Assembly (NCBI GenBank): GCA_023213395.1 | Contig: CM041465.1 | Coordinates: 196,609,741 to 196,673,740, forward strand | Length of the DNA stretch: 64,000 nt | DNA from: Cycas panzhihuaensis | Lineage: Eukaryota > Plantae > Cycadophyta | Reading direction: 5' to 3' | Shown: one piece after another, positions 17,129-58,708 of the stretch | How positions within the stretch are numbered: position 1 is the stretch's first letter | How the letters are laid out: every line of letters starts with the position of its first letter | Notes under the pieces: model-generated | Told to the model about the DNA's origin: nothing | What the model saw: the letters and a program-made list of their open reading frames with translations, nothing else | Database searches by the model: none | Made by a program: the position numbers and the translations under genes

Positions 17129-20100
17129 TGGAAGTACGCCTCTCAGGGGTCACTAAAGATAAGGAGATTTAAGCCAATACTATCACTACGTCAAGCACTT
17201 AAAAGTCCTCGAAGGTAGGGGATAGGTCACCCACAAAGGGAATCCATGTGTTAGAATGTAGGTTCAAAGCCCCGTAAATAGCACACAAGACTTTCTCTCT
17301 TGGCAAGGTCCTTGTCGAGTTTGAGTTAGGCAAGGGTGTTTCTAATTTACCAAGTAGCCTGAGCAAAGACTCTCCTATCCTAATAGGAGAAGGAAGGAGA
17401 GAAAAGATCAAGCTGCTCTTCCAAGGAAGAAGGGAAGTAAAAGAGATAGGATCTAACAGGATATGGGCCTATGGAACAAGTGAGAGGAATAATCGGTTGA
17501 AGGGTGTGAAGGGGATTTGGTATATAGAAACCAAATTCGAGAAACAAGATTAATGGTGTGTTTCAATAAAGATCACCTAAAGGGGGTGCCTCTAGGGTTT
17601 AGGCTAAAAAGAGGCAAATTGATTAATTACCCTAAGAGTTTTAGGTAGTGTTTTAGTCTTGTTTAAAGAGTAAGATGGTGTGGAAATGCAAGATATCAAT
17701 CTCAAAAGAGTATATCTCAACAAAAATGCTCTCTCTCTCTCTCTCTTATTTTCATCAATGAAAGTTTAGTTAAAGGAAGAGAGGGTGAAAGGGCAATAAA
17801 GCATATGAATGACCTATGTAACCTTTCCTAATGATGCATGGAAGAAGGATAACTATCAAAGCCAAATCTCACCTTCCTAATCCTACCCTTATACATGTGC
17901 ATACGAATGGAATGCAAAAAGGGGGGTGTAACAAGGAAAAAGAAAAACTTTCTATGGGTTCACCACTTTTTCCTTTAAGGGGAGGAATAAGAGGAGTACT
18001 TATTTAGGCTACCCTTTTCTATGCTCATTCAAGTGGAAAGGAGGAACCAAGTCTATGCATACTAATGCAAAAATGAGAGTGCAAATATTAAGGTGCTCCT
18101 TTTTACTTTTCCTTTGATGAATGCAGGTAAACAAGTAAATGATTACTAGCTACATACAAACACAACCAATTTCCTTTTGGGAGGAAGGGGGGAGAAGCAA
18201 AGAAATAAGGAAGGAGAGAAAGGTTAGAAGGGGTGCATCTAGAAATGAGCCAGTCGATGGAGTGCCTCTCATATCCTTTCTTTGCCTTCCTTTCACCAGT
18301 CACCTTACACTCTAAGTTATGATTGACATTGTAGATGAAACCATATGTGAGGCTTCCTTACCTTCTCTGAAATGCACTATAAAAAAAGTAAAGAACTTAA
18401 ACGAAAGCTTCAAAGAAAAATAAATGTAAATGAGGCCAACGTACCTTCTAATTTACAACAGGGTTTTGCTTGCTCAAGATGGGTGGTATTCTCATGTGAA
18501 TAAACCCTTTCAACAATAAGCAATAACATGTATGTGTGTATATGTAGATGTGTATGCATATGTTGTACTAGAATGAAGTTTAAACTTGTTAAATATTTTG
18601 GATAAAGGAAATAATACGTGTTACAACTTTCCTTATATGCCAAAATATTTTGAAAAAAAACATCTAAGGGGAACAAAAGGGGGGTTTAAAGGTAGGAGAA
18701 ATGAGAGCCTCGAAATGGCTAGCTCCCATAACTAAGCTATGTCATACATGCTTGGGTACTCCAATAATTATTTAAGGAAGGATTAAAATCTCTAAATAAA
18801 CAAAAGAGGCAACTTACAAGAAGTACAAGAAGTTTCAAAAGTTGTAAAAAAAAAAAAAAATGTAAATGCTGCAAAATTCACAATGTTGTAACATTTTCAA
18901 GGTATGTAAGAAAAGTGTAGATCTCATAAAATAACAAAGCATATGAGGAAATTTACTACCAAATATTATGTATAAAGGTTGATTGCAAGAATTGCAAGGG
19001 CTGTAAATGTTACAATCAATAGAGGCCCTCACCCAAGGGGTTTGTTGGTATGTAGGATGAATACAGAGTAGGAAACCAAGAGAGGTAGGGGGATGCCCTA
19101 AAGGATATGGATGTAGGATTCAGAACTCCAGTCATGAACTCCTCTTCTCCCTCTAAAGAGAGTCTCACAATCCACCTAGCTAAGCCCAAAGAATGCCCAA
19201 GGGATATGGAGGTGCAACCAAAGGAGAAAAGAAGGGTTTGCCTTCCTTTAGACACCCAAAAGAGATAAAAATATATGCTGAACTTGCAACAAATAGAGTT
19301 ATTAACCAATTACACCTACCAAAAGAAAGGAACAACAAGAAATAAACCTATTTGTAGCCATAAAACTAAAGTAAAATGGATGTTTACCTCATATGCAAAT
19401 GAAAAGGGATAAGGATCCTGCTTGCTAGGTGAAGAAGGGGCTCCTTTTGGAGGTAAGAAAGAGACTCAAAACCTTGAAAATCCTATTGCTACTGCTAGAG
19501 TGAGAACCATGGAGGAAAGATCTACTAGAGGAGGTCTAGTTTAGACCTACATTTAGGGTTTTACCCTTGGAGAAGAAGAGAATAATAAGAGAGATCAGAA
19601 GTGTAGGTAAGAGGAATTTTTTTCCTTTTATATGAGAGCTAAGAGAGGTAAAATGAACTTAAATTTGGGTTTTTATGTCTAAATTAGGGTTCTCAAGTGA
19701 TTAGGGTTTGCTTTGGATGGGAAACAGTGGTTTGCCACATGTCATTCCCATAATAAATGTGAAACTAGCTATTGTTAGGCCTTGAAAGTTAATAGATAGT
19801 TGCCCTATGGCAAACTTCGCAGTGTTGTGAAGTTTAGTATAGTACCGCAAATATTATTGTGGTGTGAACAAAATACAAAGAAAAATAAAAAAGAAACCTA
19901 AAGACCCCTAAAAGAAGAGTCTCAGAGTGTAAAAGAGAGATATACTAGACTAGTGAGGCCTTTAGGGAACCTCTAGGCATTGATGGGGCCTCCCAAATGT
20001 ACAAAGTAGTGCATAAGAGGCCCCAACAAAGGGTATAAATTATATACATAGATGATCAATTTAAAATAATGTGTTAGGAGTTGCGTACAAGGCTAAACAT

Positions 20101-20398
20101 GAGTAAAAAGTAGGCTATAGGGGCCTATGGGTACCTAAGAGTGCTAAGGAGGTTCCATTAGAGGCTGTGTGGCGCCATAGGACCATGGTCTTGAGTCATC
20201 ATAGGCTAGATCATAGTCATAAGCATAAAATAGGCAAGCAAACTAGGTATCTCAACCACGTATGCAATAATATCATATAAAATGTAATCATTAAGTGTAT
20301 TATCACATTTTAGAGTAAATGAGAAGTAAGAGTAGAGATGTATACATGTGCCTACCTAAGAGATGTTATCCATGTCTATTCCTAATAGTCAGGAAACA
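17129..20398 (-). repeat. 3' LTR of D (~3270 bp)
   Basis: Colinear with 32217-35285 plus 40515-40728, and reverse-complement similar to the F LTR (55358-58544). Element-sense ends are TGTTTCCT...TTCCA. Confidence 0.92.
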
Positions 20399-22464
20399 CT
20401 ACCTCCTTAGTAACAGAGCCTCGTCACTAAGAAGCATCTGGTGATGGCAAATGATATCAACATAAAATAATTAGTATCATCTACTAATACAAAAAGTGTC
20501 ATCATCCAAAGGGATTGGTAGGTGTTATGGAAGATTGCATGGATAAGGAAAAGAAATGGAGCAGCATGGAGGCTACCCATGCATTGCCCAAGAATCTGGT
20601 ATGAGAAAATAAGGGGATGTGGGGATTTCCCCCATTACCCTTATGCAAGTTAAGTGTTGTGCAACCTCATAAGCACAATTAATAAGTAAATGTGAGTAGA
20701 GGATTTGTGCATAAGGAGAGTAAAGGTGTGAGAGCATTGTGCCACATATGATATGAAGAATAGAGTGAAGAATCAAACATGGTGGCCATCATAGTTTAAC
20801 CTCATTAGTGGCCTGCTTTTAGAGGTGTAAAGGGATCACAATAAAAGAGAGAAAGATCCTAGAGCCTGGGTGGCCAGGCAACCCATTCAGTTACTTAGGG
20901 AGGATCATCCAAGAGAGGGAGATGACGCTCAAGGATATGATAAACAAGACCATCTACCTTGGCATTCAGATCTTGGGGAATGTGTTGAATATCCATGGAA
21001 GAGAAAAGAGACAAAAAGGACCTAGTGATCAAAGCAAGGGCCCTCAGCCATGGGTAATGCACTTGGTAAACCTAGGTTAGTTATGATATGATGATCTAAG
21101 AGTCATAATAGAGGATGATAGGGCCATGATATAAGTGAAGTACATTTGTAAGGGCTTCGATAATAGTTGTTCACTCAGCCTCATTATTCGTAGCCTCAAG
21201 TAGAAAGATTCCATAACACATATAGTCATATATAGAGGGATCATGAAGGATCCACATGGCTACAAAAGGCCTAGGATTGCCGCGACTTCCTCCATTAGTA
21301 AAGATGAGTAGCACCATGGCGAAAAAAGAAGAGTTTGAGTTGGTTCATAAAAGAGATGGTGATAACAGTGCCAAGGCACAAAGAGGGTAGTGATGGGGCT
21401 ACAATGACTCAAAAAAGCCACAAATATGGATCATGAGAGGATAGGAGAGGCCTGGAGGTAGGCTACTAGGCTCGAGGGAGGCTTTCCGAATGAAAGAGTG
21501 AGAAAAGGTTAGGGAAAATGCTCTTTTGGGGCCCTTAAGGGTCACAAAAGGGCCTATGAAGGCCTAGAAGGGAGGAGGAACTTACCCTAGGATCCTCAAG
21601 GGCTCAAACAGATGGTAAAACTGGATCCATGATGTTGAAAGAAGCCAAAGGAGTATAAACATTAGTATGTTTCAGAGTAGTGCAAAAAATGACATAGAAG
21701 GAACCTCTAAGAAGCTGAAGGACTCATCATAAATACACCAAAAGGGTATAAAACAGAGCCTGCGGGAGTGAAAAAGGGGTTAGACTCTAAAGACAAAGTG
21801 AATGAGGATGAAGGAGCAATCCTGAGGGCTATCATAGTGAGAAGAACAGAGATGTTGCCCCAAGGGGCCCTGCGCATAAAAGGGCAAAAAGGGTGAAAAT
21901 GGAATTCATTTTCATGGTCCCCATGAGAGATCTAGAGCCCTTCCCTCTTAGTAGTAAGAATATGCTACTACTCAAGTACACCTAATGAGAGATCTAGCCA
22001 TTAGATCAAAGCAAAAAGACAACCATTAGGATCACAGAGATGAATTAGGTGCAATTAGGCCTGATCTAGTGAGTGGATCATCCCCTAGCCATTTTATTTC
22101 GTCAATTAAATTTAATGAGCTTTTTATAGTTTTTCGGGCCCCAAAGGGGCATTTGAGACACCTTGGAGCTTGAATGAGGCCCAAGGAAGGGGAGGACTAG
22201 GGCATTAGGTAGTCCTAGTCTTAGTGGGCCAAGCCTAGCCCACTCAAACTATTTATTTTTTATTTTTTAGGGCCACCCCCCTTTTCAAAGGGGGATCCAC
22301 AACCCCACGGTAAATATCATAATGCAGCAAAGTTTACGATAGGGCCTCCAAGAAAGCAAGAATTTCTTAATGGGACCTGTATCAATGTCTGCAATACTAT
22401 AGAGGTTGACGTGGGGTGAAGACAAAATAGAAGAAAACAGAAAAATAAAAAGAAAAGACCTTGG

Positions 22465-24543
22465 ATGGGTGGATTTGCTCTATTTCAGGGAGCTCTAATC
22501 ATCCAAAGAGAGGTACAACACTTGACAGGAGAGGGTTGATGGATTTTTTACTAGTTTTTAGTGTGTGTAGGCTGTTCTTATAATTGATAACTGTGAGAAT
22601 ATTAGCATGGCTATGATGAGCTTTATAGAGATGATGACATGATAAGAGCGGATGACCCTATGATGCTATGGGCTCTTAAAGGTTATCAGGATCCCACAAT
22701 ATACATCTGACTAGCATCTATTAGTCAACATAGTATCTCGATGGGATAGACAGAGGTATGTATTCCATCTCCCACAAATAGGAGATGTCATTATCATGTC
22801 GAGAGATATTAGGAGGATCATAAGAGTACCAATAGGAGAAATGCCAACATCACTGAGTACTTTACCTAGAATAGACACTACCCATAGGGAGGCAGCCAGA
22901 TTTTTTATAAGACATAGTTGATGGGATCAGTGAGGAGTATCCATCCATGCTATGGTTTTATTGAGAGTTCCTCATATGAGAAAACTCATCCCTTTGGCTA
23001 TTCTGTACTAGATATCCTAGAAATATAATTACAGGGATATCCTCAAAGGTTGGATGACTACTATCAGGAGATGTGAGGCCAAGGAGAGTTTCGACTGGGC
23101 TACTTTAATAGTAGTCAATATAGTTGATTAGCTAGACCAGGTGTGAGAAGTAGGGAGAGGAGGCTTCTCTTATTCCATGCTACTCCAATGTTGGTTCTTT
23201 GATTATTTTGGAGTGGTGGTGCCACTAAGAGGGCCCCATCCTATCCCAGATAGGGCCCCTATGGTTCACAGGTGGTAGATAAGATTCAGACAGACCAAGG
23301 ACTAGGTCCACATGAGGCGATCAATGGCAGTGACATCTTTGGATCCCCTAACCTTGATGGACTACATAGTGGATCCTTATCAAGCAATCCACTGAGAGAG
23401 TGACGAGAAGGGAGAAGAGCTAGGAGATGAGGGTAGGGATAATAATGGCAGAGATGGAGGAGATGGAGTAGGGCCATTAGGGGCTACAGGAGATGAGGCA
23501 GGTCCATAAGTGGCAACAGGAGGCGATTGACCACCACTAGGACCAACATGTAGGGAGAGAGTTGCTGGTAGATTCCTAACAGTGACCGTGGTTATGGTGG
23601 TAGAAGTAAAGGCAACAATTGCTACAACAGATTAAGGGGTCCTAAGAGAGGAGGGATGGGAGGAAGGAGATGCCTTGGCAGCCCAGGAGGTGGGCGAGGA
23701 GGTAGTACCAGGGATTGAGGAGGTCGAGGTGGTGGCAGAGAGGGTTGTAGCTGAGGAGGTAATCATCAGGGCAAAGGAGCTAGTTGTCCTAGGAGGTGAG
23801 ACTCTAACTTGAATTTAGCTTCCATTTGATCATTTGTTGCTTCCCTAGATGATCATATTTTATATCTTGATGCTTTCATATATATATATATATATATATA
23901 TACACACCCTAGATTGATTTATGATGTACAGGGCTTGGAAAGGGTAGTTGAGATTGTGAGGCTGCTGGAGGCAGTAGTAGGTAAGGTATTCCCCTAGGTT
24001 TATGCAGAGGGATAGCCTCCCATCCTGGCAAGCAAGAAGCCTCGATCAGTGGGGCCACATACAACAACATTCACCCCATTGATCTAGGCTAGGGATATAT
24101 GGGTAACGAAGTCCCAAGAGCTCCAAGAGAGGGTCAGTCAGCTACAGGGTACCCAAGATAAGCTACAGCCAAAGAGGAACTAGCTGGTAGTGGAGATGGA
24201 CACCCTACAGGGCCAGATACGAGGACTAAAGGCCCAGCTAGGAGGAGCAAGTAGTGATTCAAAGAGTAGGATCCAAATTGTTGTACTGGAGGAGAGACTT
24301 TGCAGAGCTAATAGGGAGAGGGATCACATCTATCTTAGGTATGCTTAGTTGGTGGACCATATAGCCACCAGGTCATCATGCAGTAGGATGCACACCACTA
24401 CGACAACCTAGAGGAGATCTCAGGATGAGGAGAGTGAGGTAGGGACCTTGCAGCAACACCAGAGGAGCCTATAAGGTATGTGGTCCCCCGGTGTGGGATT
24501 TGGTAGACGAGGGTATCACACCCCTTGAGGGCATAGCATCTAG
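22465..24543 (+). pseudogene. Antisense three-exon gene of D: Plant Mobile Domain (PF10536, MAIN/MAIL-like), acidic tract and coiled coil; exons 22465-22512, 22571-23795 and 23932-24543
   Basis: Exon 2 reads GLLKVIRIPQYTSD(Q)HLLVNIVSRWDRQRYVFHLPQIGDVIIMSRDIRRIIRVPIG and later FDWATLIVVNIVD(Q)L...YSMLLQCWFFDYF. These match the PMD signature blocks (LVERW..ET.TFHLP.GE.TITLEDV..ILGLPI.G; Y.WG.A.LA.LY; LLQ.W). GT-AG introns at 22513-22570 and 23796-23931. Internal stops are mostly TAG/TAA/TGA that revert to CAG/CAA/CGA. Confidence 0.85.
23879..23902. repeat. (TA)12 microsatellite in intron 2 of the antisense PMD gene
   Basis: Read directly from the sequence. Confidence 0.95.
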
Positions 24544-25345
24544 GAGATTGTATATTATGTATTTTAATAGAAAAGCTTCATACTTCTAGGGAGTTTTCAT
24601 CACATGTAGATATATGATTATACTCCTCCCTACAAGAATTTTGACTTTCTAAGGCATATTGTTTAGATGATGTACCATATGACTTTGTATAGATATAGAT
24701 AGGGGCTAATTGGTACCCCATTTTGATACATAATGATGATATTATAATGAATTTGTGATGCTATTGCTTTATTATGTAGTTTTTTTATTTATATGATGCA
24801 TAGAGAGATGAGCATATGCATATGGATGTGGGTGCAGGTGCACAAAGGGTCATGCATGTAGATAGTTTTAGTTAGCTACTATATATGATTTTTGTTGTAT
24901 CATGTGCTAATAATACCCATACTTCCTTTTAAGCAATACCACACTCATACTAGGCACACACGATCACCATATGTATCAATGATAGATACATATGAGGCTA
25001 GGAGGGGGGCACTATGTATGTTCCTCAAAAGGAGGATAATAGATATGCAAAGGAAGCAATGACTAGGGAGTATGGATACCCAAGCAAAAGGCCCTAGGTT
25101 GGGAAGAGACTCCATGCTCGAAAGTGAAGGAGGTTTACTTACCCAACTAGGAAAAGAAAGAAGATCTCCCTCAGGATGAAGGCAAGAGATGTAATATCAA
25201 TGATGGAGTCTAAAGAATGAAGAGCCACCCTAAACAATCATCATGTTTGTGGCTAGGGAAAGGAATGATATGCTTAAAGTGGTATTTTAAGCTCATTTTG
25301 AAGTGAGAGAGGGGGCATAACCATCCTACTTGGGAGTATAAGGGA

Positions 25346-28300
25346 TCACATGTAGAACTTTAGAAATTTACCATTTGTAGCTTTTTTGAACTCAAGGCCC
25401 TCCAAAGTCGCTATCCTATAAGTGCCATTATTGAAGCTCTTGAGAATGATGAAAGGGCCAACCCATTTAGGCCCAAACTTGGACAAATGATCATGGAGAT
25501 ACTCAAGCTTGAGGACATGGTCCCCAAGATTTAGAGTGTGAGGATAAAGACATTTGTCGTGTGTTCTTTATTCCCTATCCTTGGAGGCAAAGTTCACTTA
25601 GTAAGCCATTAAGCATTTCTCATCCAAGGCTTTGAGGTCGAGGATGCTGGCCTAGTGACACGATTCCTCATCAATAAGACCTCAAAGAGAAATACGTAAA
25701 GAGGGGATTTCGACTTCCAAGGGAAGGATTGGTTTGGTCCCATACACAAGGGAGAACAGGGTCATCCATATAGCTATGTGAATAGAAGTAAGATATGCCC
25801 ATAAAGCATAAGGAAGCTAGAGGTGCCAATCCCTTTGGTATTGAGCAACCATTTTCTTTAAGATGTTAATAAGGGTTTTATTAAAAGATTTGATTTAGCC
25901 ATTAGCCTTAGGGTAATAAGGAGAAGAGGTTTTGTGGGATATCCTAAACTTCCCACAAAGCTCATCCATCTCTGTATTACAAAAACGAGTACCATTATCT
26001 ATGATTAGGATGTCTGGGACCCTGAATCGATAGATAATGTGTTGGTAAATAAAAGTGGCTATAGTCTTATCGGTAATGGATGATAAAAGGACTGCTTTGA
26101 CCTAGTTGGTAAAATACTCTATCACAATTAAGATGAATTTATATTATAACAAGGAAGACGGGCTTATGGCTCTAATTCCAATTGGGAAAAAGACCATGGA
26201 GAAATGATCAGATACAAGGCCTTAAAAGGTGAATGAATGATGTTGGTATACTCTTAGCACCTATGATAACACCACAAATAGGCGTAGGCATCCTTGAAGA
26301 GGGATAGCCAATAATAACCCATGTAGAGGACCCTCTAGGCTATGGATTGGCCTCGAAAGTGGCCCCCACAAATGCCACTATGGCACTCGTGAAGTACTTG
26401 GTTTGCCTCATTGGGGTTGATGCATTGAAGGAGGACCCCATCGAAAGATCTCTTATACAAAACCTCCTCCATGAGGAAATGCTACCTAGTAGTGACCCTA
26501 ACTCGTGACCTCACCTTGTCACTAGCATCAGGATGATACTATTGTTTAGCAAGGTATTATATAATATCCTCATACCAATCGTTGTTAGCCAATGGATGGG
26601 GTGATGAGTCTTGAATGAAAAAGATGGACTCATTAAGTAAGGAGTTGTCAACTATAATGTTAGAAGAATTAAGAATAGAAGCATCAGCTAGTTGTTTAGT
26701 GACTATCATTCCCTTCTTCGACTTCCTGTTAACGATTTGAAGCTTATACTCTTAAAGGAGGATGACCTATTTACCAGTCTTACTAGTCAAGTTAGATCGA
26801 GTTAAGAGATACCTCAAGGGATCAGATTAAATGATCACCTAAGTGGTATTACCAAGTAGGTAGTGCTTGAATTTCTTGGTTGTGTGGACCAAGGCAAGGC
26901 ACTCCTTTTTGGTGAGAGAGTAGTTAAGCTCATCAAAGACTAATGTGCGACTGATAAAGTAAATGGCTTACTTGATTCCTGAATCATCTTCTTGGGTGAG
27001 TATAGCCCCCAAGTATTCATTAGTGGCTGAGGTATAAAGGATGAAGGGACAGTCGAAAAGATGGGGTGATAAGATCAGGGCAAAAGCCAAGGCTCTTTTG
27101 AGCTCCTTAAAAGTTTCCTGGGCCTTAAGAGACCAAATGAATAAGGCTCCCTTCTTCAATAGGTTAGTAAGGGGTTTAGCATTTATGGAAAAGTTTACTA
27201 GGAAATGCTTAAGGAAGCCCAACCTACCCAAAAATGACTTGATTTGGTATTGTGTTTTAGGAAGAGGCATGTCAAGGATGGCCTTGACCTTATCAGGGTC
27301 AATCTAGATTCCTTGTTTGGAAATAAGGAAACCTAAGAGTTTATTGACAGTTATGGAAAATATACATTTAAGTAAGTCTAAGCTGACATGGTATTTATGG
27401 CACCATGTGAATATGGCATGTAAATCCTTAGGGTGATGGGCCCTCTTATGAGAGAGACCCATCATATCATCCATGAAGACCTCGAGGGTTTTGTTTATAA
27501 GGTCATGAAAAATAAATTGCATTGCCTTTTAGTAAGTAGCACCTATATTTTTAAGTCCAAAAGGCATTTCTTTGTAAGTAAAGATACCCCAAGGAGTAGT
27601 GAAGGCCATTTTGTGACAGTCTTCAGGGGATATCTGGATCTGGTCATAACTAGAGAAGCTATCTATTAAGGACATGACTTCAAATATGGTGGTGCAATTA
27701 ATAATTTGATTAATAAAAGGTAAATAAAAATTATCTTTAGGGCATGCATTATTGATATCTCAAAAGTCAACACATATCCAAATCATCCCATTCTTTTTAG
27801 CAACATGAATGATGTTGGAGGCCCATTTAGGGTAGTCAATAAAAGTGATCAACCCTGCATTTAAGAGTTTTTTAACTTCCATCTTAATGGCGGTAGATAG
27901 TTTAGGATGAAAGGGGTGCTACTTTTATTGCATGGTCCAAGCACCTGGGATGGTTATAAGATTATGGATAATAATAGACGGATCTATTCCCTTCATGTTA
28001 GTGTAATTCCACATAAAAACATCATGAAAATCCTAAAAAGTAAGGGTGTATTCCTCCATCTCTTCAAGCAAACATTCTACTTCTACCTTTATGACCTTAC
28101 CAGGGGTGAGGACGATGTCCTTGGTTGCCCTCATGCACATAGCATTCTCTTCTTTGAAGTGAAGGGGGGCTTCATCAACAAGAAGGGATAAAGAGGAACC
28201 AGGCTGCTTGGGTTAGCTAGGGATGACCCAAGAGCTAGGATCTTCTAGTAACCAAGCTTATGGTGACCAGGGGGAAGACTAGGCGTAGAGCTCACTAAGT

Positions 28301-31300
28301 GCTCTAACAATGCCTCATCATTCTCGAAACAATCTACCCCATGGATAGTTTTTCTTAGGGAAGATGGGGAAGAAGAAGTGTAGGTAATGGTGAGTCCATA
28401 GTGATCAACCTACCATTGAACGTAGTCGAGAGACTCTTTAGAAGAGTTGGAAGGCATCCTCATGTGGCATGAAACAAAAGGCACCCCACCTTCATCGTTC
28501 AAGGGAAATGATAAGGTGGATGATAAAGTGGTGTGAGAGGTCACTTGAGAGATGGGAATGACCATGTGTGGCTCAGCAGGAGAACTGGGCTCCATAGTAA
28601 AGGCGGTCCCAAGTTAGGCCCCAAGATGAAATAAGTGCTCTCAATGGGTGTTTAGGAGGGATATGGGATGAGGGAGGTCCTCAAAATAGCAAGGTACCCA
28701 TAGCTCCCTACATCAATAGGAGTAAAATAGATGAGGTTAGAGGAGGAAGGGGCCTTCCTCCAAGCAAGATTTGTTAAGGATATTGATTGTGCAGGTGGAG
28801 GCATAAATGGATGGGCCCTTATTACCCTTCACTGGGTTACAGACCACCTGACGAGACTAGTTTGATTATTTAGTAGGAGGAGGCTCCTAGGAAACAACTT
28901 TCATTTGTCCTTCATGGATGAATTTAAGCTACCCCTAGCAGGACAACCACACAGATCTCATTTGGTTAAGCCATAGACATCCTAACAATAAGTTATAGTC
29001 CACATCTATGTCAAGGACCATTATATCAATGAGGATGCTTTTATCCTCGAGAGTAAGGGGAATAGAGATAGAACCTAATGGAAACTTCTCACTACCATCG
29101 TAGCCCTAGTAATGCCATGGAACTAGCTCAAGAATTATTATGCCTAACTCTTGCATGATGCATAGTGGTATAGCATTAAAAAAAGAATTGTTATCTATAA
29201 CAGTCCTTCTGAAAGTACACTCATGAGTGTTAATGGATATGGTGAAAGGGTAGTGCAATTGGCATTCCCTTTCACTAGTTTGGGGGAGGTCTTTAAGGTC
29301 AAAAGTGATGATGGGCCCCTGTTTTAGGGTACCACTCAAAGTGTGGATGGGAGTATCCACTAACCCTAAAGCCTCCAAAAGGAGAGCATGTTGCTCTGGG
29401 AAACTCCTCAAGATATCCATCATGGACATCCCAGTAGCCACAGTATGAAGCTCATCTATTATTGATAAGGGCTTCCCTTTCCCAATTAGATGGGGAAGTG
29501 TCCTTTAAAAATCATAGTGACCTGGGTGGACAGAAATGGTCTTGGGAAGTGGGGGAATCTCGGAAGGTGGGTTATCCGTGGGAGGATCTAGCTAAGAAGA
29601 GGAAGAGGCCTCCTTAGCTACTTGAGACCTAGTCAAAGCATATGGAGGGGTTGTCTCAAGCATTTAAATAACTCTCTTTCCATTGTTTTGGGATTGAGAA
29701 GGTGAAGGGGTTCAATGGCGAGAACTAGAAGAAGAGGAAGAACTTCTTTCCCTCTTTCCTTTTTCTTATGTGGAGGCAGGGTTAGGAGATATCCTCCTAT
29801 TATGGTTCCTTCTATGTTGGGTATGTTGGTCCCATTCCCCATGTTTGGGGAAGGGATCTTTATGGACAAGCTAGTCCATATTGACCTTGGATGCCCGCCT
29901 AGGGGAGGAATTATGAGGTGGGGCAAGTTTAGGATATTACACCCTACATTACGAATCCTCATGGAAATAGTCACAATGGATGGAGCAACACTTCTTTTCT
30001 AAGGAAGGTTTGATCTTCCTTATTTGAGAGGAGTGGATGTTTCCATCCTTAGGAGGTGCTACTTGGGAGGCCTAGTGGATAGGTCTATGAGAGTTTGGTG
30101 GTGAAGGAAGAGCTTTGAGCTTAAGCTCCTTCATTGTACATTTGAAAGAATGTATGGAAAAAGTTAAGGGATCTAAAGCCTTCTTCGTTGAGTGGGTAGA
30201 AGACTTTTGAGGTTGTTAAGGTTTTACGTCACATGACATAGGGGGTGCCTCTCATCATTATGATAGTTTAAGAGGTTTCTTGAGACTCACTTGGATCTCA
30301 ATAGCCTCAAGGAGCATGCATTTGGCTATGGCAGAATCACATGTTGTTGCCCCCATTTTAAGGACCTCAACATGTACCTCAAGACGGAGGGCATTCATGA
30401 AGACGTCCCTCTTCAACTCTTCAAGTAAGGTGGCCTTCATAGAGTGGAGAAGGTCATGAAAGCACCTAACAATGTCGCAGTTCATTTCCTCATGACCTTG
30501 TTTAAGAGAAAGCAAAACCTTCATCCCACTCTTGAAAGGATGAGTAACATCAAAATAGTTGATGAACTCATCCACGAGTGGCTAGAATAAATGAATGGAA
30601 TGGGCAAGGAGGCAATAAAACTATTTAAGGACATCACCCTACAAGGAATGTAGAAAATATTTTATTAAGATGTGGTTATAAGCCCAGTAATCAATACATG
30701 CCATAGAGAAACTCCTGACACGTTCAGTTGGGTCTTGTGATAAGGTCCCATCGAACTTGGGTATGTTAGGGGGATGAGGTGGTAAGTTGGTCCTTAACGC
30801 CTCAATGGATAAAGGAGCTAACCTATAATCAATAAAGGGATATACCCTTGGTTGAGTCAATGCGTCAGTGAAGGATGAAGGAGGAGGTAGGCATAGAAAC
30901 CCAAATCCTCCTTGAGAGGTTTAACCAAAGGAGGGATATGAATTTCCTCCCACTTGATGGAAAGGGACCAATCCCAAGTGAGAAGGAGTTGGAAGAGAGA
31001 TGAATGGTAAGAAAGACCCATTTCCCCTTAAGGATATACCTCTTGTTGAAAGGGGACTTGGGGAAAGGGGCCTTGGGGAGGAGTCAATCCTCCTTGCAAA
31101 GGCATTGTATGCAAGGTGATGCACGAAGATAAAATGAATGGGTGTGGAATAAGGTTTTGCCCATATGGACAACCTATAGGAGGTGTGACACCATATGGGT
31201 GGAGGGAGTCTACCCTATAAATGGGAAGGGAATTTCTCTTTTTATGCCCCCATGGTTGGGAAGTATATCCTGGGGGTAGGTCAATTGGAGGATCCCTAGG

Positions 31301-32053
31301 TTGAGGTTAAGAATGCACAAGGATGTACCCCACATGGCTAGAAGAAGGAAGGCACGAAGATCCCCTAGGTTAGGTAAGAGATGGATGGACCACAATCAGT
31401 TGAGTCATGGTCACTAAACTAGGAGGAGGTATACTCAACCTAACTTGGGAGGTAAGCATACCTTAGGAGGTCCCTAAGGTGTGAGGGTTACACAAGGCAG
31501 AAGAAACAATAGGGGGTGGCCCTATTACAGACATCAAAGTGGAGTGAGAAGAGTAAGTGGGTATAGATAAGGAAGAAGAGGGCGTTACACTATGCAAGAT
31601 GCTTTCAAATCACTTTGGGGGTGGTTGGAAGCTTATGGCTTAGATGCATTGGTATAATGCTTCAACCATGTCCGTGGGAGGGGTTCCTACTTGTTCATAT
31701 GAGGTAGAGAGTTCCTCACATGAGGTAGACCCTGCAGGTCAATCTTCATGGGGATTCTCACCAAGATGGTGGTATCCCATAGAAGATGATGCCCCCATAT
31801 CATACCTGGGGAGGTGATGGAGGCTCGGGTGCTCTTGATCACCTGGATAAAATATGGGATCATTACCCTCTTAGGTAAGACTTTAGAAGGAAGTTGAAGG
31901 TTATTGTCGGGCTTCATAAATATAGGCGTGATAAGCCCATTTTGAAGAGAATCCTTCCATGGCTGATTCAAAATTAGACAAGGGAAGGGAAGAATAAGGC
32001 GACTCTTCCAAAGAAGGAGGGAGACCTCGTAGATGACAAGAGAATTATCACAT
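25346..32053 (-). pseudogene. D gag-pol, disrupted
   Basis: Pro-rich Gag N-terminus from ATG 32053; Gag core 30258-30860; protease RRTVIDNNSFFNAIP and DYNLLLG (~28900-29250); RT with VFMDDMM (27300-27900); RNase H PFILYTSAT (26750-27270); integrase zinc finger HECHSGICGGHF (~26360-26395), core SSPYYP.ANG (~25900-25925) and GPKWVGPFII (~25450-25475); stop TGA at 25346-25348. Confidence 0.93.
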
Positions 32054-32196
32054 TCAAGTTCCTCCTAGAACTTTCGAAGAGAGAAAGACAAGTAGATTAG
32101 AGATGTTAGGGGTTGCCCAAGAAATTAGGGAAGAGATGCCAAAAGAGAAAGGCAGCATTAACATAAAGGAGATCAAAATGACTCCTTTACTAGTAG

Positions 32197-32215
32197 GTCC
32201 TCAGTATGGTTACTA
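32197..32215 (-). promoter_or_regulatory. Decayed PBS of D (tRNA-Arg type)
   Basis: TAGTAACCATACTGAGGAC, compared with TGGCAACCATACTGGGGAC in F; resembles the TGGCGACTCCACTGGGGA tRNA-Arg PBS of Ogre/Tat elements. Confidence 0.75.
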
Positions 32216-32782
32216 GTGGGAGCATGTCTCTAGGTCCTCACTATGTTAGGGGCCTAAAAGTCCTTAAAGGTAGGGGATAGGTCACCCACAAAGGGCATCC
32301 ATGCATCAGAATGTAGGTTTGGAGACCCGCAAATAGTGCACAAGACTTTCCCTCTTGGCACGCACCTTCTTGGATTGGAGTTAAGCAAGGGTATTCCTAG
32401 TTTACCGAGTAGCCTATGGAAGGACTCTCCTATCTTGATGGGATAAAGAAGGAGAGAAAAGATCAAGCCCCTCTTCTAGGGAAGAAGGGAAAGAGAAGGG
32501 ATAGGCCCTAATAGGATAGGGGCCTATGGAACAAGTAAGAGGATTCATCAGTTAAAGGGTGCGAAGGGGATTTAGTATGTGGAAACCAAATCTGAGAAAC
32601 AAGATTAATGGCATATTTCACTAAAGATTGCCTAAAGGGGGTGCCTCTAGGTTTTAGGCTAAAAAGGGGTAAGTTCATTAACTACCCTAAGAGTTTTAGG
32701 TAGTGTTTTAGTCTTGTTTAAAGAGTAAGATGGTGTGGAAATACAAGATATCAATCTCAAAAGAGTATAGCTCAACAAAAAT

Positions 32783-32784
<2 letters not shown>

Positions 32785-32850
<66 letters not shown>
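32785..32850. repeat. (TC)33 microsatellite in the 5' LTR of D
   Basis: Read directly; the matching site in the 3' LTR (17729-17746) has only (CT)9. Confidence 0.95.
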
Positions 32851-32855
<5 letters not shown>

Positions 32856-35285
32856 TTTTCATTAATGAAAGTTTAAGTTAAAGGAAGAGGGGGTGAAAGG
32901 GAGAGAAATCATATGAATGACCAATGGAACCTTTCCTAATGATGCATGGAAGAAGGATAACTATCAAAGCCAAATTTCACCTTCTTAATCCTACCCTTAT
33001 AACCGTGCATATGAATGGAATGCAAAAAGGGGGGTGTAACAAGGAAAAAAAATACATTCTATGGGTTCAACACTTTTTCCTTTAAGGGAAGGAATAAGAA
33101 GAGTACTTGTTCAAGCTACCCTTTTCTATGCTTATGTAGGTGGAAAGGAGGGACCACGTCTATGCATACTAATGCAAAAACAAGAGTGCAAATATGAAGA
33201 TGCTCCTTTTTCCTTTTCCTTTGATGAATATAAGTAAACAAGTAAATGATTACTAGCTACATGCAAACGTAATCAATTTCCTTTTGGGAGGAAGGGGGGA
33301 GAAGCAAAGAATAAGGAAGGAGAAGAAAGGTTGGTAGGGGTGCACCTACAAACGAGTTAGTCGATGGAGTGCCTCTCCTTTCCCTTCTTTGTCTTCCTTC
33401 CACCAGTCACCTTACTCTCTAAGTTGTGGTTGACATTGTAGATGAAACCATAGGTGGGGCTTCCTTACCTTCCCCAAAATATATTCTAAAAAAAGTAAAT
33501 AACTTAAAGGAAAGCTTCAAAGAAAAATAAATGTAAATGAGGCCAACGTACCTTTTGATTCGCAACATGATTTTGCTTGCTTAAGTTTGGTGGCATTCTC
33601 ATGTGAATAAACCCTTTCAACAAAAAATAATAGCATGCATGTGCATGTATATATAGATGTGCGTGTGTATGCTTCACTAGAATGAAGTTCAAAATTGCTT
33701 AATATTTTGGATGAAAGAAATAATATGTGTTACAACTTTCCTTATATGCCAAAATGTTTCCAAGAAAAACATTTAAGGGGAACAAAAGGGGGGTTTGAAG
33801 GTAAGAGAAAGGAGAGTCTTGACATGGCTAGCTCCCCCAATTAAGCTACCTATTGTGTGCTAGGGTACTCTAATAACAGGTTAAGGAACAATTGAAATCT
33901 CTAAGTAAATAAAAGAGGCAACTTACAGGAAGTACAAGAAGTTGCAAAAGCTATAAAAAAAATGTAAATGCTACAAAAGTCACAATGTTGCAACTTTTGC
34001 AAGATATGCAAGAAAAGTATAGATCTCATAAAATAACAAAGCATATAAGGAAATTTTCTACCAAATAGCATGTATGAAGGCTAATTGCAAGTGTTGTAAG
34101 GGTTGTAAATTCTATAATCAGTAGAGGCCCTCACCCAAGGAGTTTCTTGGTATGTAGGATGGATACAGAGTAGGAAACCAAGAGAGGTAGGGGGCTTCCC
34201 TAGAGGATATAGTTATAGGAGTTAGAACTCCATCTGTGAACTCCTCTTCTCCCTCTCAAGAGAGTCCCATAATCCACCTAGTTGAGCCTAAAGAATACCC
34301 AAGGGATATGGAGGTACAACCAAAGGAGAAAGGAAGAGTTTGCCTTCCTTTAGACACCCAAAAGAGATAAAAATATATGTAGAGCTTGTAACAAATAGAG
34401 TTATTAACCAATTACACATACCAAAAGAAAGGAACATTAAGAAATAAACTTATTAATAGCCACATAATTGAAGTAAAATAGATGTTTACCTCATATGCAA
34501 GTGAAAAGGGATGAGGATCCTGCTTACTAGGTGAAGAAGAGGTTCCTTTTGGAGGCAAGAAGGAAACTCAAAACCTTGAAAATCTTATTACTATTACTGG
34601 AGTGAGAACCATGGAGGAAAGATCTACTAAAGGAGGTCTAGTTTAGACTTGCATTTAGGGTTTTACCCTTGGAGAAGAAAAGAATAGGAAGAGAGATCAA
34701 AAGTATAGGTAAGAGGCATTTTTTCCTTTCGTATGAGAGCCAAGAGAGGTAAAATGAACTCAGATTTAGGTTTTTATGCCCAAATTAGGATTCTCAAGCA
34801 ATTATGATTTTCTCTAAGTAGGAAATAGTGGTCTTCCACGTGCCAATCTTGTATTAAATGTAAAACTGGTTGTTACTAGGGTATATAAGTTAATAGATAG
34901 TTGCCCCATGACAAGCTTTGTGGTGCCACAAAGTATAGCGTGGTACCGCAAATATTACAATGGTGCGAACAAAATACATAGAAAAATAAAAAATAAACCA
35001 AGAAGACCCCTAAAAGAAGAGTCCTAGGGTGTAAAAGAGAGATCTGCTAGAGTAGTAAGGCCTTTAGGGTACCTCTAGGCATTGGTGGGGCCTCCCAAAT
35101 ATACAAAGTGGTGCATAAGAGGCCCCAACGAGGGGGCTAAACTATATACAAATGTGATCAAGCTAAAATGATGTGTTAGGAGTCACGTACAAGGTTAAAC
35201 ATGAGAAAACATGGGCTACAAGGGCCAATGAATACCTAAGAGTTCTAAGGAGGTGTCATGAGGGGTTGCATGGTGCCATAGGACT

Positions 35286-35944
35286 TGTTGATAAGACAAG
35301 GGTCCAATAACCTAAAACTGCCACCAAGATCTAAACTATTTTGTAACTAGTTACAAGAATCGAAACTAAAATTTAACATGTAAGTTCTTAAACTAGAGAT
35401 AATATAATAAAATGAATAAGAAAGCCAAGCATCACATATACACCCAATATAACATGGTAAAACCCTAGTAGTGTGATAGGGAAACATCCACACAGGAAAG
35501 GTATCAATCTTTATTATTAATAAATAGATAAATATATACAATATGTAATAGAATGCTCATAGCAACAATAGTCAGCTGCCTAATTCTTCACAATACATCC
35601 AATACATCAAACACCATCAACATAATGAAAAAACACCATAAATCGGGCTATATGAGATAGTCATACAAGGTACAAATCTCAACCATAGAATCTAGGGTAT
35701 TTTTAGTGAACGACCCTGATTCTCTTTATAATTTAGTATTCTTTTTAGTGCTAGCTTTTTGGGTCGGGGGCTATCATCCCCAAACCCCCTCTTTGTAGGG
35801 GGCATTCCAATAACTCCCACACCTTCCTGGCCAAGGGGGGCTTCCGCCCCCTTTGGAACCCCCCAAGGAAGTTTGGGAGGGAAACTACGCTACCAACCTA
35901 TCAAAATTTTAGCCTCTAAAACATCGTTGTTACATTATCTAATA
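35286..35944 (-). repeat. 3' LTR of copia E
   Basis: About 21 mismatches against 39839-40509 in the first 225 bp (hand count). Confidence 0.95.
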
Positions 35945-36002
35945 ATCTTCACCTTGACAATAATTTACCTGATACCTTTCTTGGACCATTCATCACCTCT
36001 TC

Positions 36003-39000
36003 TACAAGCCAAGAGAAGTCAAATACCATTTGAACTTCTCTAATAGTACTAGTTTTGTGAACATATCAACACATTTCTATTTTATGTTAACCTTCTCAAG
36101 TGCCACTCCACCTACTTCCATAAATTATCTAACAAAATGGTACTTAAGAGCAATATGCTTTGTTCTACTATGATAAGTTGGATTCTTTACTAAGTAAATG
36201 GCACTTTGACTATTATAAAATACCTTTACATTTTTCTGTTTCCTTCTAAGCTTAACCAATAGACCTTGAAACTAAATTGCTTCTTTACAAGCATACGTTG
36301 TAGCAATATATTCAGCTTATGTAGTCAATAATGCAATTGTACTATGTAATTTTGACTTCTAACTAAACTATTTGTAAGAAGTAGATCTTCTCTTATCTAA
36401 ATCTCCTGTAAAGTTTGAATCAATATATCCATAAACTTGATTATCTGCACCTCCAAAGGTGATGCAATAGTCACTTATGCCTCTCAAATACCAAAGCATC
36501 TATTTCACTACTGCCCAATGTTCCTTTCCTGGATTTGCCATAAACCTACTAACTACACCAACTGCATGTGAAATGTCAAGTGTTGTACATATCATGGCAT
36601 ACATCAAACTTCCTACTACACTAGCATAAGGCACATGAGACATATAATCCTTTTCTTCTTTATTACTAGGACTCATACTCGAAGAAAGCTTGAAATAAGA
36701 AACCAACAGGATACTCATTGGTTTCACATTTGCCATACCAAACCTAGTTAGCACCTTCTCCACATATTTCTATTATGATAACCATAGCTTACCATTTTTC
36801 CTATCTCTATGTATCTCTATACCTAAGATTTTTTTTGCAGCTCCTAGATCCATCACATTAAAAGTCTTAGCTAATTGAGCCTTTAACTTATTAATTTCTA
36901 TCATGTTCTTGCTTGTAACAAGTATGTCATCACCATATAATACCAAGATAATGAATAAGCCATTGTCTAAGAATTTAAAATAAACACAATGATCATACTC
37001 ACTTATTTTGAAATTATGGCTCTCTATGAAGGCATCAAACTTCTTGTACCATTGCCTAGGTGATTGCTTTAGGCCATACAATGATTTCCTGAGCCTGCAA
37101 ACAAGTCTTTTTCTTCCATCCTATACAAACCCTTCTAATTGATCCATATAGATCTCCTCATTTAAATCTCCATATAGAAAAATTATTTTTACGCCTAACT
37201 ACTCCAACTCCAAATCAAGAGAAGCTACTAATGCTAACAGAACTTGAATTGAAATAAGTTTGACAACTGGTGAAAACATCTCATGAAAATTAATACCTAC
37301 TGTCTGTATAAAGCCTTTAGCCACCAGTCTGGCCCTATATAGCCCTCTTCCACTTCTTACTATGGATATTATCTATTGCTTCCTGATAACATGTAGGCTC
37401 ACCATCATTAGAAATCAAAGTAATAGAAATAGAAAGGTTGTACCTATCAGGTTTATGACTAACTCGTATAGATCTTCTAATGGTTAGTGGAGGAGTGTCC
37501 ACATACTCTTGTAAATTTGTTATAGATTCATCTTCAAAAAGATCTTCCTGCTCTTCTATTTCTAAAGATGGCTAGGTTTCAAACTTGACCTATTACTATT
37601 CAACTTTCTACTCCTATTTGACTTCAACTTCTACACTATCAGATTTTAGAAAGGGAGATTCATCAAATACAACATCTCTGTTAATAGTGATTTTATAGGC
37701 AATAGGATCCCACAACCTATATCTCTTTATACCATCTCTATCACCATAACCAATAAAGATACATCTCTTAGATTTTGGATCTAACTTTCAATGTTGACTT
37801 TTATCAGTCAAGGCATAAGCATCACAACCAAAAACTTTCAAATTTGAATAGTCATATAGATGTCCAATCTATACCTCTTCAAGAATCTTGAAATCTATTG
37901 TAAGTGATGGTGACTTGTTTACCAAATAGCAAGTTGTTTGAATAGCTTCTTCCCATAAGCCCTGCTGCACCTCTACATTACTTAGAATGCTTCTTGCTCT
38001 TTCTAAGAGCATTATATTCATGTGCTTAGCTATGCCATTTTGCTATAGAGTGTAGCTAGTGGTCTTCTTCCTTTTGATCCCAGCTTCTCTATAATAGTTC
38101 TCAAACTCCAAGGAGTTGAACTCACCTCCATTATTAGTTCTTAAACATTTGATTGACTTGCCATTGCTCTTCTCAACTAGAGCCTTGAACTACTTAAACA
38201 CACTGAAAACATCATATTTCCTTTTCAAAAAATAGATCCATACCTTTCTGGAGTAATCATCTATAAATATGACAAAGTATAATGATCCTCCATAAGATAT
38301 TGTAGGGGTTAGTCCCCATACATTTGAATGTATGTAATCCAGAATACCTTTACAAGTGTGACTCCCTACTTTAAACTTGAGTCTACATTGCTTTCCAAAA
38401 ATACAATATTTTCAAAAAGCCAAATCTAAAAGTGGTAAGTTAGGAAGTAACTTACAGTTCATTAGCGCATTTAGTCCTCTCTTACTCATGTGCCTAAGTC
38501 TCTGATACCATATCTGAGCTAGATCTTCTGCAGTCTTTAATGTTGTAGTTGCATGGCTAACATCTATACTTCTCACTAAAATGTAAAGGTTTCCTTTCTT
38601 TAAGGCTTTCATAATAACCAAAGAACCCTTTGACACCTTTAAGACTCCTTCATGACATGTGTACTTATAACCACCAGAATCTAGTTCACCTAAGGAAATC
38701 AGATTCCTTTTTAGATGAGGTACATGTATAACTTCAATTAATGTTCTCACTACACCATCGAACATTTTAATTATGATGCTACTAATACCCATTATCTTAC
38801 AAGAAACTTCATTTTCCATAAGCACATCACCACCATCAAGAGGCTGGTATGATGAGAACCAACTCTTATATAGACACATGTGCTGTGAAGCACCCGAATC
38901 TAATAACCAATTATGGTGATAATGGGAAACATTACAAGCAACTAAGAAATCATCATATGCACTTTGATTTAACTCCACCTGATTAGCCTCCTTGGCAAGA

Positions 39001-39766
39001 TCTTCCTTTTTCTGGAACTCCTTCCTTTTGTAGCAATCTTTCTTGAGGTGATCTATCTTATTATAGTGCCAACATCTGAGCTTACTCTTCTTGCCTTTTG
39101 ACTTTGACATCAATATGTCCCTGGAGCTTTGTCCTCTCTTAATTGTTCTACCCCTTGCTATCATAGCTTCTAGTATGGAGGTTTCATGCCTAGAGTTCTT
39201 CCTCACTTCTTTCATCAATAAAGCACTCACAACAAAATCATAGTCTAATTCATCTATAATGCTAAAACTAATTAAGGAGACAATAGTATTCTAGGATTCT
39301 AGTAATGAATATAACAAGGTAATAGCACTATCGTCATCCTCAATTGTGACATCAAAACTAGCCAAGTAATAAATAAGAGTATGAAAATATTTAAATGATC
39401 AGCAATTTTTGTACCTTCCTTTATTCATAATAAGTACAATTACCTCTTCAAGTAGATTCAATCTCTCACTGATTTGGTCATATACAAGCCTTCCAACTGG
39501 GTCCATAATCATGTTGTTGTCTGCTCCCCTGTGATGTTAAATAGAACTTCATCTGCCAAGTATAATCATATTATGCTAAGATCCCTTTTGTCTAGATCAT
39601 CCCATTCATCATCGTCTATCCCTACGGGTTTCTTCGATTTGCCTGCAAGAGCTCTATGTAAATATTATTGTATTAGAACATCATACACTTTCAACTTTCA
39701 CAACTGGAAGTTGTTCTTACCATTGAATTTCCCCACCTCAAACTTTGCATTCACTAGTTTCACCAT
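36003..39766 (-). pseudogene. Copia E gag-pol, disrupted
   Basis: ORF 38412-39230 has the zinc knuckle CWHYNKIDHLKKDC and protease WLLDSGASQHM; ORFs 36773-37081 and 36500-36763 are RT (YGLKQSPRQWYKKF, VLYGDDILV); RNase H at ~36050-36400. Confidence 0.93.
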
Positions 39767-39838
39767 TTGGTATAGAAAAAGTTGAAACCAAAACCTTCAT
39801 AAACTCACTCCAAAAATAAAAATAGCTCTAATACCACT

Positions 39839-40509
39839 TGTTGAGAAGACAAGGGCCTAATAACCTGAAATTGCCACCAAGATCTAAACTATTTTGCAAC
39901 TAGTTATAGGAATCGAAATTGAAATTTAACATGCAAGTTATTAAACTAGAGATAATATAATAAAATGAATAAGAAAGCAAAGCATCACATATACACATGA
40001 TATAACGTGGTAAAACCCTAGCAGTGTGCTAGGGAAACATCCATACAGAAAAGGTATCAATCTTTATTATCAATGAATAGAGAAATATATATAATCTATA
40101 GTAGAATGCTCACAACAACAACAACCAGCTACCCAACTTCTCACAGTACATCCAATACATCAAACACCATTAACATAATGAAAAACACCCTAAATCGGGC
40201 TATATGAGATATTCATATAGGGCACAAATCTCGACCATAGAATCTAGGGTATTTTTAGCAAATGACCCTGATTCTCTTTACAATTTAGTATGCTTTTTAG
40301 TGCTATCTTTTTTGGTCAGGGGCTATTGTGTCTAAACCCCCTCTTTGTAGAGGGCGTTCTAATAACCCTTGCACCCCCCCCCCGGCCAAGGGGGGCTCCC
40401 ACCCCCCTTAGAACCCCCTAAGGAGGTTTGGGAGGGGGGGGAGGGAGGAACGCATTACCAACCTATCAAAATTTTAGCCTCCAAAACATTTTTGTCATAT
40501 TATCTAACA
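39839..40509 (-). repeat. 5' LTR of copia E
   Basis: TGTTG...CTAACA, preceded by PBS GCTCTAATACCA (39825-39836). Confidence 0.95.
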
Positions 40510-40945
40510 GGACCATGGTCCTGAGTCGTCATAGGCTAGATCATAATCACAAGCATAAAATAGGTAGGCAAACTAGGCATCTCAACCATGTATGCAATAA
40601 TATCATACAAAATATAATTATTAAGCATCTCATCACAATTTAGAGTAAATGAGGAGTAAGAGTAGAGATGTATACCTATGCCTACCTAAGAGGTGCTATC
40701 CATATCCATTCCCGGTAGCTAGGAAACACTCTCTAGACAAGTTGAGCCCCTTTCATTGCACCAAAGATTTTCCTGTAGCCTTATTTATACTAGTCCCAGT
40801 AGTCCAAACTCATCGTCCTCATGTTAGTCCAAAAAATAGTATAAGTAGCCCAAATTCTATGATAGATAATTCCATATGGAGGCTTGGTGATATCCACCAT
40901 CTTACTTCAACTTATTCATAGAGCTTCCATTTCCAAAGGAGCAAA

Positions 40946-58300: not shown

Positions 58301-58544
58301 AGGGCCCATTCATAGCTACTCGGTAATCTAAGGATACCCTTACCCAATCCAAATCTAGGAAGGTACTCATACAAAGGGGAATGTCTTAAGTGTTATTTGT
58401 GGGTCCTTTAACTTGTGTTTCGATGTGTAGACACCCTTTGAGGATGACCTATCCTCCCTTCTGAGACCCTTAAGCCCCTTATTGTAGTTGTAATATTGGC
58501 TTAGGTTCTCTTATCCATAATGACCCCTCAGAGATATGCTTCCA
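55358..58544 (+). repeat. 5' LTR of F (~3190 bp); contains (CA)10 at ~57108-57128
   Basis: Starts (A/T)GTTTCTTGGCTACCAGGAATGG, compared with D TGTTTCCTAGCTACCGGGAATGG; ends GCTTCCA before the PBS. Confidence 0.88.
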
Positions 58545-58545
58545 T

Positions 58546-58564
58546 TGGCAACCATACTGGGGAC
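58546..58564 (+). promoter_or_regulatory. PBS of F (tRNA-Arg type)
   Basis: TGGCAACCATACTGGGGAC, one base after the LTR-terminal CA. Confidence 0.85.
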
Positions 58565-58708
58565 TTATAGTAAGGGAACATTATGATTTCCCTTATGTTA
58601 GCATTGCCCTTCTCCTTTGGTTTATTCCTTCTAGATTTGTTGGGCAATCCCTAACATCTTTTCTTTGTTTTTATCCTTGCCTCTTCTAAAGTTCTAGGTA
58701 AAACTTAA

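Follow-up and report, generated by a model that had tools for sequence, protein, structure and literature searches.

The window, by which we mean the whole 64-kb stretch of DNA that was analysed, contains an LTR retrotransposon, here called element D, whose two LTRs were paired by self-comparison of the window (self-blastn). In element orientation the 3' LTR occupies 17183-20400 on the minus strand and the 5' LTR occupies 32238-40730 on the same strand, the latter consisting of 32238-35284 and 40509-40730 and being split by a nested LTR element of ~5.2 kb at 35283-40507. Stop-free pieces from 25349-29105 on the minus strand match the Pfam domains of a decayed protease-RT-RNaseH-integrase, which reads from the protease (28938-29105) through the RT (RVT_1, 27307-27759), RT_RNaseH_2 (26971-27303), the integrase zinc finger (26338-26481), and rve (25898-26101) to the integrase SH3 domain (25349-25567), and Pfam finds no RNase H in the ~490 nt between RT_RNaseH_2 and the integrase zinc finger. 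On the plus strand, opposite to gag-pol of element D and between its integrase and 3' LTR, lies the unit considered here, at 22465-24543. The combined LTR and Pfam domain map bears out the original prediction in so far as it placed a decayed coding unit, antisense to gag-pol, in exactly this interval. For element D itself, a PBS, a PPT, and a target-site duplication were looked for with no clear call, and no tRNA genes were found in the 64-kb window.

The LTR pair has a raw divergence of 13.4% (K2P 0.15), made up of 315 transitions and 114 transversions (Ts:Tv 2.8), and it shows 11 gap openings per 429 substitutions, or one per ~39. The CpG o/e across element D is 0.16. Element D is an old, heavily deaminated insertion, and from plant substitution rates we would date it to between several million and tens of millions of years ago, the figure varying with the rate chosen.

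The main coding block of the antisense unit occupies 22571-23758 on the plus strand in one frame with 16 stops, and it contains the Plant Mobile Domain (PMD), a G/D/E tract, and the start of an E/V-rich tract. In a HMMER search of 1.84 billion representatives, a 68-aa piece from within this block (22715-22918) retrieved five short proteins with a best E value of 3.9e-16, and a profile search supplied six further fragments, for 11 in total (P0001-P0011). The 11 relatives, each an unnamed singleton from a run assembly, are all fragmentary, with lengths of 47-163 aa, and no intact family member was found in the protein databases searched, whether by HMMER, by profile search, or by a walk from P0011. 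In tblastn a single frame of 22583-23275 accommodates all 11 fragments, the longer ones with E values of 1e-35 to 2e-42, and together they provide 1000 aligned residues with 0 gaps at 43-58% identity, in which 10 stops of the window are read across. Given that the LTRs have accumulated 11 gaps per 429 substitutions, the complete absence of gaps over so many residues at this level of identity argues, as far as alignments can tell, that the PMD frame was under selection in the past.

Assignment of the block to the PMD family comes largely through these relatives, five of which match Pfam PF10536 with E values of 2.9e-5, 1e-4, 3.1e-4, 1.6e-3, and 7.7e-3. The best relatives score 23.8, 22.1, 20.5, 18.1, and 15.9 bits against a gathering score of 34.9, and the profile positions that are matched (1-67, 38-179, 6-52, 5-48, and 126-215) are colinear with the DNA. 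The unit itself was scanned with Pfam as individual stop-free pieces, and among ten such pieces there was one weak PMD match, that of 23147-23275 to profile positions 177-211 (E 0.094, 12.3 bits, below the cutoff of 34.9), and nothing else; a further eight, taken from the C-terminal part and the flanks, had no match. Coverage of PF10536 thus extends over profile positions 1-215 of 347, or about the first two thirds, with positions 216-347 unmatched. In the ESM Atlas, 24 of the 30 nearest clusters to P0006 are PMD, with a score of 0.93. The PMD signature blocks that had been reported for the unit are upheld by the gapless tblastn alignments to 11 relatives and by the five colinear PF10536 matches, and on this comparative evidence the PMD homology in 22583-23275 is real.

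Behind the PMD block and in the same frame is a G/D/E-rich tract at 23396-23506, which is followed by a second tract at 23636-23809. The latter had been described as E/A-rich, and an acidic tract is indeed present there, but of its 58 residues 15 are E, 12 V, 7 G, and 6 A, which makes it E/V-rich and not E/A-rich. No relatives of the acidic part were detectable in the protein database. The C-terminal block, 23932-24543 on the plus strand, is read in a different frame with nine stops including the last, and it holds a heptad segment in 24088-24345, with the coiled coil at about 24112-24345, in a frame other than that of the PMD. The coiled-coil call is made from heptad a/d occupancy compared with shuffles, and in the best 28-residue window the a and d positions are filled by L, I, V, or M to a score reached by 8 of 2000 shuffles, in agreement with the heptad-like coiled coil of the original prediction. 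A protein database search with the coiled-coil piece returned no relatives, a blank that says little under the length limits of the search.

One could ask whether decayed repeat DNA has merely by chance come to look like a gene here, a reading favoured by the fact that no stop-free piece rises above the Pfam gathering threshold. Against it are gapless tblastn alignments with E values down to 2e-42, five independent relatives with colinear PMD matches, and a heptad score that only 8 of 2000 shuffles attain, and we regard chance as having practically no prospect of being the explanation.

The unit was modelled as three blocks, each translated separately. Preceding the main and C-terminal blocks is a weak candidate first exon at 22465-22512 on the plus strand, consisting of an ATG and 16 codons in the third frame, which is stop-free and has a GT after its end; it is covered by no relative, and the bin around it is shared by relatively few copies. 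The 58 nt between this candidate exon and the main block (22513-22570, plus strand) have GT..AG ends and may be a first intron or an untranslated leader. In many other genomic copies, as seen in contig loose ends at 22589, an acceptor-like TTTTACAG directly precedes the point at which the homologous main block starts, and this comparison lends a small measure of support to the intron reading of 22513-22570. In the case of the second frame change, a candidate intron or the site of a frame-changing indel lies at 23759-23931 on the plus strand (173 nt, GT..AG ends, AT 0.68, with a (TA)n run). GAG-GTx codons abound in the E/V tract, for which reason 49 distinct GT-AG pairs would bring the reading back into frame at this point; the coordinates of intron 2 are thus not fixed, and an intron looks the same as an indel from this copy alone. 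Contigs of other copies gave no informative joint at the candidate introns.

On the upstream side of the unit, 175-350 nt before the candidate ATG at 22465, is a GC-rich island at 22115-22290, with no strand assigned, in which GGGCC, TGGGCC, and AGCCCA motifs are clustered and which lies between the PMD unit and a divergent unit for an archaeal-type RNase H (aRH). The island has a GC content of 0.50 and contains five GGGCC/GGCCC sites in 156 nt compared with 0.2 expected, among its sites being two TGGGCC and one AGCCCA, and this GGGCC cluster is the densest in the 64-kb window, in the top 0.03% of 156-nt windows. The bin matching the island was covered by contigs in 4 of 4 runs. On the downstream side, an AT-rich region at 24545-24900 on the plus strand, a candidate 3' UTR, has a GC content of 0.30 compared with 0.46 in the coding block. 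Both flanks had been noted before, the one as a promoter-like GGGCC/AGCCCA stretch and the other as AT-rich, and the motif counts and base composition agree with those descriptions; we infer that the island may be a promoter, possibly a bidirectional one. A scan for bacterial-type promoters and terminators came out below the shuffled expectation, with a model that is not relevant to a plant.

The second unit at the island is the aRH remnant, a free-standing frame of 140 codons on the minus strand with its ATG at 21317 and its TAA at 20895. It has the orientation of gag-pol, is flanked by the island on one side and by the 3' LTR of element D on the other, and faces the PMD unit head-to-head. 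It contains four in-frame stops. The N-terminal 57 residues can be aligned with the 140-aa RNase H chains 4h8k and 3u3g in the PDB, starting at residue 4 of the chains, with an E value of 0.1, and of the 30 nearest clusters in the ESM Atlas 26 are RNase_H; the C-terminal piece had no PDB match, and Pfam gave no match on the pieces of the remnant. From these similarities we identify 20895-21317 as an aRH remnant with moderate confidence. Another possible reading, that the region is what is left of a plant L1 LINE at its 3' terminus, was not retained, as there is no poly(A) run before the LTR and the region is common to the family's copies.

In the three-block reading the PMD unit has 616 codons and 25 in-frame stops (13 TAG, eight TGA, and four TAA), of which 24 are premature, and its reading frame changes no fewer than two times. 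Relatives could be compared at 10 of the stops and have Gln, Arg, or Trp at nine of these, and in comparison with thousands of other copies the substitutions of this copy number 280-410 for each of A>G, G>A, C>T, and T>C and 24-92 for each transversion type. As judged against the relatives, the stops in the PMD unit fit the decay pattern of C-to-T and G-to-A transitions, in line with the earlier explanation that deamination-type stops had caused ORF calling to miss the unit. With 24 premature stops and the frame changes, no product can act from the locus, and the PMD gene at 22465-24543 is a pseudogene that does nothing there.

The frame that is kept over long stretches, together with the GC-rich island upstream and the AT-rich region downstream, could be taken to mean that this is a live or recently live PMD gene with a product able to act on MAIN/MAIL complexes. 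For the copy in the window that reading is refuted by the 24 premature stops among the 616 codons, and it is opposed by the LTR divergence (K2P 0.15) and the CpG o/e of 0.16, by a run search in which no run on record as RNA contained the stretch, and by the literature, in which the PMDs of Gypsy elements belong to a clade other than that of MAIN/MAIL. We see virtually no likelihood of its being correct.

Parts of the stretch were found by run search in four DNA data sets with two species labels. In each run, 18,500-21,700 contigs match 20401-25600 at a likeness of at least 80%, most of them being less than 90% alike, and all 30 of the bins into which this interval was divided are covered by contigs. 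With about 20,000 matching contigs per run and every bin covered, the cassette is, on sequence likeness, part of a very abundant, old repeat family and not a one-off insertion. This bears directly on the alternative in which a host PMD gene or a MULE fragment was inserted into one copy of element D. PMDs are known in both host genes and MULEs (PMC5418596), and relatively few copies share the bin at 22315-22488 that directly precedes the unit, as might follow from such an event, but coverage of every 20401-25600 bin in four runs by ~20,000 contigs per run is against it, as are the absence of terminal repeats or target duplications flanking the PMD unit and a position and orientation that match the published Tat eORF (PMC4408406). 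An inserted host or MULE fragment is accordingly very improbable in our estimation.

Antisense accessory genes of this kind have been described in Tat elements. Steinbauerova et al. (2011) reported PMD-related extra ORFs in Tat elements, and Ustyantsev et al. (2015) described an antisense 3' PMD eORF in the gymnosperm Tat lineage III and, in lineage V, an antisense eORF that consists of a PMD and a C-terminal coiled coil (PMC4408406). PF10536 was found in 57% of Ogre elements by Neumann et al. (2019) (PMC6317226). The occurrence of PMDs in Tat/Ogre elements, which the original prediction had put forward as established, is thus on record in the published eORFs (PMC4408406, PMC6317226). The PMD unit resembles the Tat antisense eORF (eORF-3'R) in its location after the integrase and on the opposite strand, and it resembles the lineage V eORF in having an N-terminal PMD and a C-terminal coiled coil, here recognized by its heptad pattern, and the Tat hosts are like element D in possessing large LTRs and an extra archaeal-type RNase H. 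The antisense PMD(-CC) layout behind the integrase is therefore already described and is not new. The copy in element D differs from the described Tat eORF in being fully decayed.

The position of the aRH further defines the comparison. In lineage V and Ogre elements the aRH lies between RH and INT, whereas in element D it is separate and downstream of the antisense gene. An aRH after INT defines TatIII, a gymnosperm Tat clade, in the REXdb classification (PMC6317226), and element D, with PROT-RT-RH-INT ... aRH and none between RH and INT, is like TatIII in this regard, with the modest support for the aRH to be kept in mind. Judged by its Pfam matches and the aRH remnant, element D has the domain order published for gymnosperm-type TatIII elements, in which the integrase precedes the aRH and no aRH comes earlier, and it is on this order that the likeness is based. 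In element D, unlike TatIII, the antisense gene separates INT from aRH, and the order of integrase, antisense PMD, and aRH differs from the text for lineage III, which has the aRH at the C-terminus of Pol. Element D thus mixes the PMD and coiled coil, which belong to lineage V in the 2015 text, with an aRH after INT.

Taking the locus as a whole, we consider it very probable that 22465-24543 is a dead accessory gene, with an acidic linker joining its PMD and coiled coil, of an old, very abundant Ty3/gypsy LTR retrotransposon of the Tat lineage. If so, the PMD gene of the intact ancestor would have been transcribed from its own internal promoter, against the genomic RNA of the element, and since it was antisense to that RNA any introns would survive retrotransposition. 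The protein might have oligomerised via the coiled coil and bound DNA or chromatin via the PMD, and it would presumably have served the element in trans.

What that service might have been can be approached through the characterized PMD and transposon proteins. Experiments on PMD proteins have concerned nuclear regulators of chromatin only (PMC5418596, PMC7156037), and the Arabidopsis proteins MAIN, MAIL1, and MAIL2 share the Pfam PMD family with the unit described here and are stand-alone PMD proteins that act on chromatin. A 2025 preprint reports that Polycomb silencing is counteracted by MAIN/MAIL1/MAIL2 at specific DNA motifs and that the fold predicted for PMD-C is similar to that of VANC (DUF1985), an anti-silencing protein that binds DNA, and it puts forward the hypothesis that TE-borne PMD-C proteins are possible anti-silencers (bioRxiv 10.1101/2024.09.27.615353). 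One important consideration is that the PMDs of Gypsy elements form clades PMD-A1/A2 and MAIN/MAIL form PMD-C in the work of Ikeda et al. (2017) (PMC5418596), and the contrast of PMD-C with Gypsy PMD-A is that of published phylogeny. The host MAIN/MAIL proteins are also without a coiled-coil tail like that of the PMD unit, and the PP7L partnership and the binding of M1M/M2M motifs are known only for host PMD proteins. The suggestion that the element-borne PMD protein mimicked or interfered with MAIN/MAIL was not supported. VANC, of the VANDAL/MULE DNA transposons, is like the PMD unit in being a transposon-encoded accessory protein; it acts on DNA methylation of DNA transposons, and a comparable role for the PMD-A of a retrotransposon is pure hypothesis.

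Within these bounds, shielding of element chromatin from silencing is the role that we would place first for the ancestral PMD protein, and it is offered tentatively, with well under an even chance of being right; an anti-silencing role for an element-borne PMD is speculation. The intact protein could alternatively have been a component of the particle or life cycle, such as an Env-like protein, a movement-type coiled-coil protein, or a cofactor that acts with the RNase H in reverse transcription or integration. An Env-like reading of the coiled coil was raised by Ustyantsev et al. (PMC4408406), and the PMD gene is indeed head-to-head with a replication enzyme, the RNase H, but no transmembrane or signal segment was seen in the translated pieces of the PMD unit, and the PMD proteins that have been studied experimentally all regulate chromatin in the nucleus (PMC5418596, PMC7156037). 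A particle or life-cycle component seems to us improbable, and shielding from silencing stays the preferred role.

A more elaborate version of the chromatin-shielding role can be built from the features around the island. In it, the antisense PMD-CC gene and the free-standing RNase H of 140 codons would be the two divergent genes of one cassette, in which a shared, host-type GGGCC/TGGGCC island, similar to 'site II', drives both genes, small antisense introns are kept, and an oligomeric PMD protein binds the element's own DNA against silencing, which would make it the retrotransposon counterpart of VANC. This full combination is rather unlikely in our view.

At the level of annotation, a 2-kb stretch that is non-coding to ORF callers is the fossil of a known retrotransposon accessory gene, and its recognition contributes to annotation cleanup; the family that carries it is one of the major repeats here and in a related species. 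The role of retrotransposon-borne PMD proteins is a wider question, with experiments under way for the PMDs of hosts and DNA transposons, and a dead copy cannot tell that role but an intact family member could, should one exist in the lineage. The departures from the published layout are small and comprise the combination of a PMD and coiled coil with an aRH after INT, the free-standing aRH, and the possible antisense introns, and if the head-to-head aRH around the GGGCC-rich island and the possible introns prove to be common across copies, they would be a modest extension of Tat architecture.

In a single contig of species label B, one of two species labels among the DNA runs whose contigs match the family of element D (a decayed, probably Tat-type Ty3/gypsy LTR retrotransposon), position 20467 is joined to 25283 with 28 other letters in between. 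This contig is a family copy without the entire PMD-aRH cassette, which comprises the archaeal-type RNase H (aRH) remnant and the decayed antisense Plant Mobile Domain (PMD) and coiled-coil gene. The aRH remnant is free-standing (20895-21317, - strand) and spans 140 codons with four in-frame stops, a length equal to that of the stand-alone RNase H chains 4h8k and 3u3g. Its start ATG lies within a GCCATGG context, and the remnant is not fused to Pol but is arranged head-to-head with the antisense PMD unit. Situated between these divergent units is the densest GGGCC/TGGGCC cluster of the window (22115-22290), a candidate that may represent a bidirectional promoter of host type.

Within the PMD gene, two GT..AG intervals on the + strand, 22513-22570 and 23759-23931, could be introns, as removal of each would restore the frame, and such introns could persist because the gene is antisense to the genomic RNA. 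The interval 23759-23931 is not a unique solution, with 49 GT-AG pairs restoring the frame. There is a frameshift within 23254-23400, in either the window copy or P0011, one of 11 related protein fragments aligned to the PMD block (22583-23275). Beyond that block the P0011 match runs in the other frame of the window (23293-23364, E 7.5e-4), and a PMD-like LD..L..Y.V.PY motif is retained in the window's own frame.

The 5' LTR of element D contains a nested LTR element of ~5.2 kb (35283-40507), with LTRs of about 660 bp each (35283-35942 and 39836-40507) that are 85% alike. No other part of the window has an ORF longer than 150 aa; the one inside this nested element lies on the - strand at 38412-39230. 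A second D-related element (58268-62120) lies in + orientation, opposite to D, is 72% identical to the gag/5' region of D (28676-32461), and extends towards the window's end; its 3' part, the expected location of any PMD cassette, lies beyond the window.
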